Both the position numbers and the translations under genes were made by a program. A stretch of DNA of 45,908 bases, taken from the NCBI GenBank assembly GCA_013416795.1, contig RQSC01001001.1:1-45908 (forward strand), written 5' to 3'. Source of the stretch: Prasinococcaceae sp. CCMP 1430 (taxonomy: Eukaryota > Plantae > Prasinodermophyta). Below the pieces are notes generated by a model. That model was not told the origin of the DNA, searched no databases, and worked only from the letters and a program-made list of their open reading frames with translations. Shown here piece by piece: positions 1 through 16,216 of the stretch (positions are counted from its first letter, which is position 1; every line of letters starts with the position of its first letter).

Positions 1-14
1 CCGTCCGCGCCCAT
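1..14 (-). CDS. Possible start of a gene running off the left edge (ATG GGC GCG GAC...)
   Basis: ATG at 14 on the minus strand in a gcgATGG context. Upstream on that strand are (CCCT)n/(GCT)n 5'UTR-like simple repeats and an AT-richer promoter-like stretch with telo-box motifs (about 180-370). Only 4 codons are visible. Confidence 0.3.
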
Positions 15-56
15 CGCGTGCGCGCACGCCAAGGGGCGCGGCGCGGCGCGGCGTAG

Positions 57-160: not shown

Positions 161-359
161 GCTGCCGCTGCCCGCACCCTCCAAATCCACACATTCAGGA
201 TGACATTTCCGTAAAACATCGCCAACCGTAGCCCAAAAAGCACTCACAATTTCGCGCTTTTTTCGCGGCGAAAATGCGCGCGGCCGGCGCGCGGCTGTTG
301 CGCGCGGAACTTCGAACGGTTTAGGTTTGAGGGGGATTCGATGCCGACGCAGACAATTG

Positions 360-12431: not shown

Positions 12432-13784
12432 GCGTCGGGCTCGGGGCGGGCGGCGGAGGGCGCGGGGGCCACGACGAGCCAAACGCTCACGAGCCTCAAG
12501 ACCGGCACGCACGTCTACACCATCAAGGGCTACTCGCTGCTCGTCAACCGAGGCGTCGGCGAGGCCGTCTCGAGCGAGCAGTTCGAGGCGGGCGGCCACA
12601 GCTGGACGGTGCACTTCTATCCAGGTGAGTGCAACGCGCTGGCGCTCCTGGGCTGCGCGCCGCGAGAGCGCAGGGGCTGCCACGCGCCTCGCGGCGGCCG
12701 CTGCGTGGCCTCTGACGCGTGCGCGCGACGCTGCGCGTGGATCCTGGCGCAACCGCGCGCGCCGCATCCCGAACGCACTTCGCCTGCGCGCCTCACGCAA
12801 TTTGTCCTCCTTCGCGCGCTCCCGCGCGCAGGTGGATACAACGACGAAGGGAGCAATGCGGAGTACGTGGCGCTCTCGCTCACGCTGGCGTCGGAGGCGA
12901 CCAACCTGTGGGCGCTGTACACGTTCACGATGGTCGACCAAAGCGGCAAGGGCGAGGACAAGTCCATGGGACGCTCCGTCGCGCGCGGTCCGTGCAAGTT
13001 CGAGAGCATCAATTTCCGGCGCGGCAAGCCAAGGTTCATCAAGCGCGCTGAGCTCCAGAGCAGTGGCCTGCTGATGAACGACACTGTGGTGGTGCGCTGC
13101 GAGGTCAGCGTGGTCGTCACCGAGACGACGGTGCCTTCCGAGGGCCCGTACATCCACGTGCCGCCCGCGCGCGTCGGGGAGGATCTTGCCAAGCTCATGC
13201 ATGACGAGAGCAGCTGCGACGTGACGTTCATAGTGGGCGAGGAGCGCGAGCGCATCAGGGCACACAAGCTCATCCTCGGAGCGCGCTCGGACGTGTTTTT
13301 GACGATGTTCAACTCGCCCATGCGGCAAGGGCAGGAGGAAGGCATGGAGGTCGTGCAGGACACGCAACCCGAAGTCTTCAGAGCGCTGCTCCATTTTGTC
13401 TACACGGGTGAGCTGCGCGCGCGCGACGACACACCGGAGATGAGCCAGCACCTTTTGCGCGCGGCGGATTTCTTCAGACTCGACAGGCTGCGCCTGATGT
13501 GCGAGAGGCGGCTCTGCGAGAAGGTCGACGCCTCCAACGTGTCGACTACTCTCGTGCTGGCGGACATGCACAACGCCCAGCAGCTCAAGCAAGTGTGCCT
13601 CGACTACGCCGCGGCCAACCTGCAGGGGGTGATGTCATCGGACGGTTTCGGGACCCTCATGCAATACGACAGGTCGCTGCACCTTGAGGTGCTCGAGGCA
13701 GCCGCTAATCTCATTGAGAGCGACAGGAAGCACCTGGACGAGGATGGCAACGCGCGCGGCGCCAAGCGACGGCGCACGCGATGA
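12432..13784 (+). CDS. BPM: BTB/POZ-MATH protein (plant BPM/SPOP-like CUL3 adaptor); exons about 12432-12624 and 12832-13784; start unresolved
   Basis: MATH: HVYTIKGYS, FEAGGHSWTVHFYP|GGY, YVALSLTL, FIKRAELQSSGLLMNDTVVVRCEV. BTB: DVTFIVG, AHKLILGARSDVF, FRALLHFVYT, LLRAADFF, LRLMCE. BACK: LKQVCLDY. The intron 12625-12831 (GTGAGT..GCAG) joins the frames. Confidence 0.9.
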   Translation, partial: ASGSGRAAEGAGATTSQTLTSLKTGTHVYTIKGYSLLVNRGVGEAVSSEQFEAGGHSWTVHFYPGECNALALLGCAPRERRGCHAPRGGRCVASDACARRCAWILAQPRAPHPERTSPARLTQFVLLRALPRAGGYNDEGSNAEYVALSLTLASEATNLWALYTFTMVDQSGKGEDKSMGRSVARGPCKFESINFRRGKPRFIKRAELQSSGLLMNDTVVVRCEVSVVVTETTVPSEGPYIHVPPARVGEDLAKLMHDESSCDVTFIVGEERERIRAHKLILGARSDVFLTMFNSPMRQGQEEGMEVVQDTQPEVFRALLHFVYTGELRARDDTPEMSQHLLRAADFFRLDRLRLMCERRLCEKVDASNVSTTLVLADMHNAQQLKQVCLDYAAANLQGVMSSDGFGTLMQYDRSLHLEVLEAAANLIESDRKHLDEDGNARGAKRRRTR

Positions 13785-14435
13785 GCGCGAGGCGGAGGAA
13801 CCCAGATCCTACGCACCCCTTCTAGACGTCTTAAGCAGACCCAAGCGCAAGCTCGCCGATAGGAACGCAACAGCGCCGTAAGATTTTCGGCCACTCGTTC
13901 TTTGAACTCGTACTGCACATCCGTCTTGAGCGCTCGTGTGCGGTCGCGGGCGCTGGACCCTCCTCCGTTGTGATTCTCATACTGTGCGTGCGGGAATCTT
14001 GACTTACGGAGCGCGCGCCTGCGAGCAGCGCCTCACGCCGGCGGGAGCTTGGTAGCCTAAGGCGCTGCCACCTCGTCATGCTCCCAGGACAGGCCCTCCT
14101 GTACATTGATTGGACAAGAAATCACGCTCGAGCAGGCTCATTGCGAGGACCGGCTTGTCACCTTCGGACTGGTCCGAGGCACGCCGTCAACCCGCCCGTG
14201 CCCTCGCACGCCTGCGCGAGCATACTGATGCCGTGGAGGGGAGCGAGGAGGCGGGGGAGCGCAAATGCTTGCGATCTCTTACTGTACGTAGTACTACTGT
14301 GTTGCTTGCTTTGCGAGAGCCGCCCTCCCCGCGTCTTCAGAGGTCTGCATGCAGAGCCCACGCACCCACGCAGGCGAGCCCGCGCACGAGACGAGTTTTC
14401 GTGCGCGTGCCGATGTGCCCGCGTGCATGCGCTCT

Positions 14436-14480
14436 TTCGAGCAGCGGCCCCCATGTGTGGGTTTCGGCTACTGCTGTCAT
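14436..14480 (-). promoter_or_regulatory. Eukaryotic type II SECIS element (core and apical part; helix I extends about 10 nt each side)
   Basis: Minus strand reads ATGAC AGCAGTAGCC GAAA CCCA CACA TGGG GGCCGCTGCT CGAA. It has the AUGA/GA quartet, a 10-bp helix II with one A-C mismatch and one U-G pair, unpaired AAA 12 nt after AUGA and an apical CCCA/UGGG mini-stem. It lies about 140 nt downstream of the TAG of a gene with an in-frame TGA. Confidence 0.88.
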
Positions 14481-14619
14481 GTGCGTGCTCCGCCGGGATG
14501 AGACAGGGTCGAGAGAAGGGGAGGGTGGACTCGCGCGCAGCAGCTCACACATCCGAATGCGCATGGACACATCCGCACCCTGCGCGTGCGCACAACCGCG
14601 CTCGCAGCACTCCCGTCGC

Positions 14620-15479
14620 CTAGAGCAGCGCAGCGGCGGCGGTTGCAGCGAGCGCGCCGACCGCGGACGCGCGCACGCGAACGAGCATGCGCCCGGCGCC
14701 GCTGCTGGCTCCATCCGTGTCATCACTGCCATCATCGCCTTCGGCGCGCGCGGGCGCGTCCGATGAAGGTGGGGTCGCATCATCCTGTGCCGGCGGAGGG
14801 GGACTGGCGCTGCCAACACCAGCCAGTGCGGCCTCGATTGCCTGCACCGGCGCGTGCGCGCATGTGTGAGTACGCACGCGCGCGTGCAGGTCTGCCAACA
14901 CACGCTGGCGCTTGCGAGGGTCCGTGCGAGCGAACTCACCTCGTCGAGCAGGCCCGGCGTCGTTTCAGACCTGAATTTCGTGACGATTTCCTCGACCTCA
15001 CCGGCAGGTGTAATCACGACGAAGCGTGGGCGGCTCGATGTGAACCACGTCGAGCCCAGGTTCTCGGTGTCGCGGAGCGTGGCGATGGCGGTGTTGGCCC
15101 CGCCAGAGTATGTGGGCCATGCGTCGCAATCGCTGCTGCTCGTTGTCCAGAGGAGCGTCGCAAAGCGCACGCGGTCGCCGTACTTGGTTTTGGCGTCGCT
15201 GGCATACTCGTCGAAAAGTGGCGCTGCGGCCCTGCACGAACCTCAGTTTACGAAGCTCTTGTCAAGCACGAGCACGTTGCCGTCGCCGAGCAGGCTCTCA
15301 ATGGATGCCTCATCAGCGCCGCCCGCGGCTGCGGCGCCGTCGCACACGGAGAAGCTGCGAACGAGCACGTCCTGCGTGAGCGCGTCGCCGGCGCCGAACG
15401 GTGCCTGCGCGCGCGCGGCCGGCGCGAGCGCGAGCGCCAGGGTGGCGGCGAGCGCACTCGCCACGGTGCGGCGCCTCAT
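14620..15479 (-). CDS. Predicted secreted, GPI-anchored thioredoxin-fold (TlpA/redoxin-like) selenoprotein with a UGSC motif, 253 aa; exons 15479-14940 and 14841-14620; Sec codon TGA at 15245-15243
   Basis: Reading through the TGA gives GDGNVLVLDKSFVN-U-GSC-RAAAPLFDEYASDAKTKYGDRVRFATLL ... RPRFVVITPAGEV, which has the Trx beta1-UxxC-alpha, beta2 and cis-Pro/beta3-beta4 pattern. Signal peptide ...ALALAPAARA|Q. Intron 14939-14842 is GTGAGT..GTGCAG. The C-terminus is DGASSGAGRMLVRVRASAVGALAATAAAALL*. A SECIS lies in the 3'UTR. Confidence 0.87.
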
Positions 15480-16216
15480 CCCGCGCGACGAGGAAGCCCG
15501 CCGCTCTCGGGGTGGGTACGCGCGGCGTCTGCCGCCCGCGCGGGCAGGCGCGCGCGCGCCGCGCCTAGAAGCCACATGGATGCCACGTCACCCGCCGATT
15601 GCCAAGCATCCTCGTACGAAGACCTCGCACACCGCCCAGATGGTGCGCGTCACAGCGCGTGCCCAGCACGCGCGCGCGCGCACGCGCGCTCGGGGAACGA
15701 ACCGGCGCATCCAATGGCGGAGAGACATCCGTGGTCGTGCTCCCGGTCTTTTGGGGGGGCGATCCCCGACTGTTCGGGTGTCCTCCCTATTTACCCGGGA
15801 TCGACTCCCGCTCGCAGACTCGATCGCGATTTTCATTTCATTTCCATTATTTCCCCTCATCTCATCCTCATCAGAGCGAGTGCAGTGCGCCACCCTGGTC
15901 ACCACACACCTAGCAGGCCCGCACGCGGCGCGCGCGGATTTTGAATCGGCACAGCGCGCACGCGCGACGGCCGCAGGCTCGCCCCACCCCTCTCTCTCCG
16001 TCCGGACACCCGCCAGCAAGCTCGCCCTGCCGGCACGTCCCACTGCCAGTGGTACTGCGCAGGCCGCGCGCCCCGCGAGAGTCGCGCCCGCCCGCGTTGA
16101 GCAAGCCGCGCCCGCCGCCATCAGCCTGAGGGTGCGCGGCCCGTCCGGAGCGCGGCGCCAACGCCTTCGGCGGCGACCATTCTGGTTGCTACCTCGCCAG
16201 GCAGCAACAGCAGCGG

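Follow-up and report, generated by a model that had tools for sequence, protein, structure and literature searches.

Does the in-frame TGA at codon 79 of an interrupted gene in Prasinococcaceae sp. CCMP 1430 (Prasinodermophyta) end the protein, or is it read as selenocysteine (Sec)? The question is raised by contig RQSC01001001.1 of assembly GCA_013416795.1, of which positions 1 to 45,908 were analyzed; this whole stretch of 45.9 kb is referred to below as the window. A preliminary description, made from the letters of the window, had proposed that several open reading frame (ORF) fragments on the minus strand belong to one hidden thioredoxin-fold selenoprotein with a U-G-S-C redox motif. The locus is a genuine, expressed selenoprotein gene, and the residue at codon 79 is almost certainly Sec. 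Very probably it is a functional nuclear gene of this marine green picoalga in which UGA codon 79 is recoded to Sec by means of a Sec insertion sequence (SECIS) element lying within the 3' untranslated region (3'UTR), and which encodes a secreted, probably membrane-tethered, thioredoxin-like protein with a putative oxidoreductase function. The parts of the gene on which this reading depends are as follows, L001 and the other L numbers being environmental contigs and P0001 and P0007 database proteins.

15479 (ATG) to 14622-14620 (TAG), minus strand: selenoprotein gene with two exons, read from the sequence.
14940 to 15479, minus strand: exon 1, codons 1-180, with ATG at 15479-15477; read from the sequence, transcript L001 covering it from 15409 downstream.
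15243 to 15245, minus strand: in-frame TGA, codon 79, almost certainly read as selenocysteine; kept in L001, L007, L008, L002, and L006, and aligned to Cys92 of P0007.
15234 to 15245, minus strand: U-G-S-C redox motif (TGA GGT TCG TGC), which aligns on the CGHC and CPYC active sites of PDI and thioredoxin.
14842 to 14939, minus strand: intron GTGAGT..GCAG, 98 nt, phase 0; exactly spliced in transcript L001 and protein P0001.
14620 to 14841, minus strand: exon 2, codons 181-253 and TAG 14622-14620; supported by the sequence, P0001, and L001.
14305 to 14619, minus strand: 3'UTR in its minimum extent, from the alignment of L001 down to 14305.

On the minus strand codon 79 is translated in the context ...LDKSFVN-U-GSC-RAAAP..., and the frame that follows it is free of stops as far as the GAG at 14942-14940 that ends exon 1. 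The computed precursor has 253 codons and a mass of ~25.6 kDa. A single in-frame TGA interrupts an otherwise open frame, and two other lineages show conservation of this frame on either side of it. The gene is not a chance ORF: an environmental transcript has the intron precisely removed, and a second species as well as Pyramimonas preserve the frame before and after the TGA. The preliminary description placed all of its landmarks correctly (ATG 15479, TGA at codon 79, GGT TCG TGC, a canonical intron, and TAG 14622-14620), and the fragments from which it had assembled the gene (15243-15575, 14337-15170, and 14620-14901) are present in the program-made list of ORFs. A GC-rich imperfect palindrome lies across the 3' end of the intron and the splice acceptor (14839-14892); its match to mir-466 (18.9 bits, E 4.5) is spurious and probably reflects just low-complexity CG/CA sequence.

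Expression of the gene is shown by an ocean metatranscriptome contig. A search of representative proteins recovered P0001, the spliced product (...LLDE|AIEA...), whose sole contig is L001, a 1,007-nt Logan assembly of Tara Oceans metatranscriptome run ERR1719217; Tara Oceans samples thus contain RNA of the selenoprotein gene. At 99.4-99.6% identity to the window, L001 is joined exactly at 14940|14841 without the intron, still has the TGA, and continues past the SECIS element to 14305. Two metagenome contigs, L007 (a Tara scaffold) and L008, come from the same species (98% identity) and both keep the TGA. Their single-nucleotide polymorphisms fall in a third codon position, the intron, the segment encoding the tail, and the UTRs, with none at the TGA or inside the SECIS element. 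Compared with the window, both contigs also have 18 nt inserted near 15519, in the 5' leader just upstream of the start codon, with further polymorphisms nearby, while their coding region and SECIS element hardly vary. Selenoproteins escape standard annotation pipelines, and here every database gene call for the gene is truncated at the TGA; the representatives of two clusters of N-terminal fragments, P0013 (7 member sequences) and P0015 (17), both stop at ...KSFVN. Since the spliced L001 as well as L007 and L008 keep the TGA, and the P0013 and P0015 representatives end at ...KSFVN, both a sequencing error at the TGA and its removal by splicing are excluded. The preliminary description had named reads with TGC or TGG in place of TGA, and transcripts lacking the codon, among the outcomes that would overturn its proposal; neither is seen in these three contigs, and TGA is retained in spliced RNA.

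A second species provides an orthologue on contigs L002-L006, which derive from ENA and Tara metagenomes. The orthologous protein reads ...VVVDKSFVN-TGA-GSC-RAAAPRF..., and TGA-GSC is kept in L002 and L006. By the Nei-Gojobori method, synonymous divergence (dS) between the window gene and the orthologue is 1.07-1.32, which is saturated, and the ratio of nonsynonymous to synonymous divergence (dN/dS) is 0.50 upstream of the TGA (48 codons) and 0.33 downstream (100 codons). Such constraint on both sides of the codon at saturated dS argues that translation must continue beyond the TGA in the same frame. The orthologue has a 330-nt phase-1 intron before VRFATLLW (L002:2322-2651) and none at the site of the window intron (14842-14939), and the window gene has the reverse arrangement. 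Judging by these different intron positions, the orthologue is an independent gene copy in another genome and not contamination. No synteny between the window and the orthologue contig is detectable outside the gene itself. The contigs of the sister species fall into two groups, L003/L005 and L002/L004/L006, which diverge completely ~210 nt past the stop codon, downstream of ...GCAATGT (L002 ~3296); this split may reflect a polymorphism of structure, the presence of two haplotypes, or chimeric assembly.

The only more distant relative found is P0007, a 267-aa protein of Pyramimonas parkeae (MMETSP0058/EukProt), in which the motif reads ...EKSYVN-C-AGC-KQAAP.... Both pieces of the window protein align colinearly with it. 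The N-terminal piece ends at N91 of P0007 and the post-Sec piece begins at C95, the equivalent of Cys82, and the TGA therefore falls on Cys92; by this alignment the two residues are a classical Sec/Cys pair. The preliminary description had expected homologues to show Cys or TGA at position 79, and TGA is present in L002 and L006 and Cys in P0007. Among the invariant positions of the three-way alignment are C46, U/C79, C82, A-A-P, ATLLW, C118-x-x-W, L-x-D-x-x-N-x-G-x-x-W-F, S-R-P, and P-x-G-x-V.

These comparisons bear on the alternative that the TGA is a genuine stop, so that the locus produces only a secreted peptide of 78 residues or is a pseudogene, and the downstream frame is untranslated. 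Gene callers do terminate the ORF at this codon, the Rfam score of the SECIS element (given below) is sub-threshold, and TGA is the commonest closer of long stop-to-stop frames in the window, a weak point, as many of those frames are spurious. The downstream frame is, however, under purifying selection (dN/dS 0.33 at dS ~1.25), and it encodes the remainder of the domain together with stalk and tail, in the order seen in the full-length Cys homologue, with which it is colinear. Moreover, the TGA itself is conserved over saturated synonymous divergence, and exon 2 and the SECIS element are retained in the mRNA. A genuine stop is accordingly a highly improbable account of the locus.

If the codon is recoded, a SECIS element would be expected in the 3'UTR, where the preliminary description had suggested that one be sought, and an element of this shape is indeed present.

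14426 to 14487, minus strand: SECIS element of type II shape, with ATGA at 14480-14477, unpaired AAA at 14464-14462, and the 3' GA at 14438-14437; from RNAfold, a pattern scan, and Rfam.

The stem-loop lies ~140 nt past the TAG. The minimum free energy structure predicted by RNAfold for 14415-14500 (minus strand) has the type II SECIS shape: helix I is followed by an internal loop with AUGA facing GA, then by helix II, by GAAA left unpaired exactly 12 nt beyond the SECIS core, and by a mini-stem. A pattern in the style of SECISearch (ATGA, 9-13 nt, AA, 3' GA, helix II with <=3 mismatches, helix I with >=6/8 pairs) matched exactly once on both strands of the window, at this element. In 100 dinucleotide-preserving shuffles the pattern occurred 0.3 times per window, or ~0.0013 expected occurrences on the correct strand of a 400-nt UTR. 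In a search limited to 121 nt, the Rfam model SECIS_1 (RF00031) aligned from end to end with AUGA, AAA, and GA in register. The element is unchanged in L001, L007, and L008. The 3'UTR of the orthologue contains an evidently homologous stem-loop (L002:3131-3196), whose ...AGCCGAAA... apex and 12-nt spacing match those of the window element. A run of RNAalifold on the window and orthologue candidates gave no both-sided changes, the run having been hampered by the MAFFT alignment.

What kind of protein does the recoded frame encode? Profile and model comparisons point to a thioredoxin-like domain with the Sec in its active site.

14940 to 15389, minus strand: predicted thioredoxin-like domain, codons ~31-180, with conserved C46, U79, C82, and C118; from the three-way alignment, the PDB profile, and Foldseek.

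The family profile was taken from alignment A5; in A5 and in A7 short fragments had been trimmed, since MAFFT misplaced them in A1 and A3. Searched against all PDB sequences, this profile gave 27 weak matches (E 0.056-3.9), every one of them to a thioredoxin-fold protein (PDI, thioredoxins, QSOX, TXNDC5, YkuV), and the alignments place the C/U-x-x-C of the family on the CGHC or CPYC active site and its helix 1 on helix 1. The proposal that the TGA occupies the position of the first Cys of a CxxC is borne out by these alignments and by Cys92 of P0007. Two low-confidence AlphaFold2 models were made from the three-lineage alignment, and in the second the elements are ordered strand, CxxC, helix, strand, ..., strand, strand, helix. 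With the first model, the top 50 Foldseek matches were only peroxiredoxins, ResA, DsbE, and related proteins. With the second, the matches listed were mostly DsbE (template modelling (TM) score 0.52/0.51) and thioredoxins (target TM reaching 0.57); the other listed rows bear the titles of fusion constructs or larger enzymes (such as Puf60-thioredoxin, PieE, RubL, a beta1-adrenoceptor construct, and an arabinanase), each presumed to include a thioredoxin or thioredoxin-like domain. The listed matches to these models are thus thioredoxin-fold proteins or constructs presumed to have such a domain. An invariant S-R-P stands directly before predicted strand 3 in all three homologues and may supply the cis-Pro of the fold, the model confidence (pLDDT) being below 50. 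The preliminary description had compared the protein with the TlpA/redoxin type, and the resemblance appears to hold at the level of fold, as seen in the PDB profile and Foldseek results, but not as membership of the TlpA/Redoxin family, for which there is no Pfam match.

Outside the domain, three further segments suggest how the protein may be delivered and held.

15408 to 15479, minus strand: predicted signal peptide, codons 1-24, with basic RRR, a hydrophobic core, and a probable cleavage site ARA|Q; hydropathy window 5-22.
14671 to 14841, minus strand: acidic stalk rich in Ala, Pro, Ser, and Asp, net charge ~-8; from composition.
14623 to 14670, minus strand: C-terminal hydrophobic tail, resembling a glycosylphosphatidylinositol (GPI) attachment signal or a tail anchor; hydropathy window 238-253.

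All three homologues share this order of signal peptide, domain, acidic Ala/Pro/Ser-rich linker (net charge -6 to -8), and terminal hydrophobic stretch. The terminal stretch is preceded by small residues, and its position is conserved in all three; in the window protein the tail has much Ala and its hydrophobicity is no more than moderate. In hydropathy and sequence pattern the three proteins resemble typical GPI-attachment signals (small residues in the omega region, a short polar spacer, and a hydrophobic end with no cytosolic tail), and a tail anchor would also be possible. The protein would then enter the secretory pathway and be tethered to a membrane, most likely at the outer face of the plasma membrane. 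Its localization, GPI anchoring, substrate, and direction of electron flow are what we infer in the following scheme. During translation UGA codon 79 is very probably decoded as Sec, driven by the eukaryotic type II SECIS element in the 3'UTR, and Sec79, where helix 1 begins, stands in for the N-terminal, attacking Cys of a CxxC motif, which here reads U-G-S-C. The selenolate of Sec79 would attack a substrate disulfide or an oxidized species, and Cys82 would resolve the intermediate through a selenenylsulfide. Within the secretory pathway or on the cell surface, the protein may thereby act as a thiol-disulfide oxidoreductase, either a reductase or an isomerase; peroxidase activity is less likely. 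C46 and C118, both conserved, may be joined in a structural disulfide. The role of the terminal hydrophobic segment is most likely to direct GPI anchoring or to fix the protein to a membrane in some other way. As mechanisms, the decoding and the redox chemistry are both well known.

A number of results weigh against the selenoprotein reading or against parts of it. The reading of Sec comes here from nucleic-acid and protein sequences, and no tRNA gene lies within the 45.9-kb window. The SECIS_1 alignment scores 16.7 bits, far short of the gathering score of 35 of the curated covariance model, and it surfaced only in the 121-nt search, an Rfam scan by E-value of 3.5 kb having returned no SECIS. 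The published core consensus is UGAN/KGAW (SECISearch3 paper, PMC3753652), and the 3' core in the window is C-GA-A, with C instead of K; SECIS elements with lineage-specific characteristics are described from Ostreococcus and similar organisms (PMC3753652). In the orthologue, no AUGA-type SECIS is present within 240 nt of the 3'UTR and there is no Rfam match, AGGA replacing AUGA in the homologous stem-loop in all five contigs (L002-L006). As for the fold, a profile of the C-terminal half found no thioredoxin-fold structure in the PDB, its sole match being an irrelevant sulfotransferase (E 0.93), and no Pfam model of the thioredoxin clan matches even the full-length Cys homologue. The two AlphaFold2 models have pLDDT values of 37.6 and 47.0, and the Foldseek E-values are only ~2e-3, on which account a thioredoxin fold with the U/CxxC at the N-terminus of helix 1 is proposed with moderate confidence. 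Finally, the family is known from three lineages, and its conservation statistics are thin.

The AGGA quartet of the orthologue is also the point on which a further alternative turns, that a near-cognate tRNA (for Cys, Trp, or Arg), in place of Sec-tRNA, reads the UGA, with no selenoprotein being made. An orthologue without a canonical AUGA SECIS would be compatible with such readthrough. In folding, the AGGA stem-loop adopts the same overall shape as the window element when the quartet is held open, and the pair flanking the G.A tandem, U-A in the window, would be G.U in the orthologue. Against near-cognate decoding stand the SECIS-shaped element itself, which lies where a SECIS would be expected and does not vary among wild populations, and the location of the codon exactly at the redox-active Cys position, a hallmark of Sec/Cys pairs. 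Decoding by a near-cognate tRNA is thus very improbable, and recoding to Sec is the preferred explanation. The AGGA variant of the sister species offers a natural test of how much variation of the SECIS core is tolerated in the lineage.

Does the protein then belong to a family already described? Pfam searches at E up to 10 gave no match for the three window pieces or for the full-length proteins P0007 and P0008. NCBIfam release 20, also at E up to 10, gave none for the window pieces or the full-length Cys homologue; this search presumes that the library includes the model NF041046, and very weak matches are discarded by the filters of HMMER. A phmmer search of the post-Sec piece against 1.84 billion representatives returned no bacterial, Ostreococcus, Aureococcus, or other algal relatives, and word-indexed protein searches returned only further fragments of the same three lineages. 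Scanning JGI metagenomes with the family alignment produced 115 pattern matches, none of which was confirmed by tblastn. Three ENA metagenome proteins (P0003, P0004, and P0006) were rejected as homologues: they are large repeat proteins with >=10 repeats of ~125 aa, and their phmmer E-values against the post-Sec piece (1e-11 to 3e-5) are misleading sums of weak per-repeat matches.

These searches are the main evidence on the remaining alternative, that the protein is a true selenoprotein but a divergent member of a described family, such as the UGSC-containing proteins or the algal PDI-like or TlpA-like selenoproteins. The "UGSC-containing protein" is an abundant bacterial selenoprotein family of ocean metagenomes, for which a thioredoxin-like fold is presumed ("likely Trx-like") and which, like the window protein, lacked a Pfam domain (Zhang and Gladyshev 2008, PMC2398784); its family model is now NF041046 (PMC13188914). 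Both UGSC and TlpA appear in the set of algal selenoprotein families given by Jiang et al. (2020, PMC7539508), UGSC being one of the rarely distributed ones. The U-G-S-C tetrapeptide is identical, and helix 1 (C-x-x-C-R/K-x-A-A-P-x-F/W-x-E/A-F/Y-A) resembles the signature of PDI a-domains. A tetrapeptide match by itself is nevertheless weak evidence, and the Pfam, NCBIfam (a library that should include NF041046), and phmmer results all run counter to membership, making assignment to a described family unlikely. Because no NCBIfam match and no bacterial or other algal relatives by phmmer were found, the window protein is not filed in the bacterial UGSC family, with which a remote relationship has an outside chance of being real.

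The protein is best regarded as the representative of an orphan thioredoxin-fold family with a very narrow known distribution; the family is new and its surface anchoring possibly so. The preliminary description had raised the possibility of a new family, and this holds as far as tested, with three lineages found. A stronger version is possible and is put forward tentatively: an undescribed eukaryotic selenoprotein family, restricted to early-diverging green algae, whose members would be thioredoxin-fold enzymes held at the cell surface by a GPI anchor, with Sec in the window lineage and its sister species, Cys in Pyramimonas, and a non-canonical AGGA-core SECIS in the sister species. If true, it would be the first lipid-anchored extracellular selenoprotein. 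The orphan family is an addition to the algal selenoproteome, and its clean Sec/Cys pair is of use in asking what leads picoplankton to spend resources on selenium. Should the surface or GPI location hold, it would place selenium redox chemistry on the exterior of phytoplankton cells, with a bearing on peroxide and disulfide chemistry at that boundary and on selenium demand in oligotrophic oceans.

Elsewhere in the window, GC content is 56-72% per 2-kb block and mostly 63-71%. The convergent neighbor of the selenoprotein gene (12609-13784, plus strand) encodes a MATH-BTB-BACK protein similar to SPOP/BPM (Pfam BTB 2.4e-25, BACK_BPM_SPOP, and MATH_2), and its 3' end faces the 3'UTR of the selenoprotein gene.

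Four known systems invite comparison. Like the window protein, the bacterial UGSC family (NF041046) has U-G-S-C with Sec as the first residue of a UxxC, had no Pfam domain when described, is presumed to have a thioredoxin-like fold, and is abundant in aquatic microbes. The window gene differs in being eukaryotic, with an intron, a 3'UTR SECIS element, a predicted signal peptide, a stalk, and a hydrophobic tail, and in having no match to the hidden Markov model (HMM). PDI a-domains, among them the algal PDI_a to PDI_e (Jiang et al. 2020, PMC7539508), share with the window protein the secretory pathway, predicted for the latter, and the helix 1 pattern C-x-x-C-K/R-x-x-A-P-x-aromatic-x-E-x-A, and PDI provides the best profile matches. 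Unlike PDI, the window protein has a single domain, no match to Pfam Thioredoxin, and, in place of an endoplasmic reticulum (ER)-retention signal, a terminal hydrophobic tail. Sep15 (SELENOF) and SELENOM are ER-resident thioredoxin-like selenoproteins with a CxU or CxxU motif, in which Sec is the C-terminal residue. They resemble the window protein in combining a signal peptide with a small thioredoxin-like domain and in having Sec in the redox motif, but Sec lies at the opposite end of that motif, there is no sequence similarity, and Sep15 and SELENOM have no stalk or anchor. Proteins of the TlpA/ResA/DsbE/CcmG group (Pfam Redoxin, AhpC-TSA, and Thioredoxin_8) differ from the window protein in the residues at the active site, where the window protein has N-U and not W-C, and thus Sec and not Cys, and the window protein lacks a Pfam match to them and is compared with them through low-confidence models. 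The two have in common an extracytoplasmic setting, predicted for the window protein, a CxxC that follows strand 1, a long insertion separating strand 2 from a strand 3 preceded by Pro, and ~72 residues between the active site and a conserved R-P; DsbE and ResA are among the top Foldseek matches, and YkuV is a sequence-profile match. Although the window protein fails HMM membership of their families, TlpA, ResA, and DsbE are its best structural analogues.

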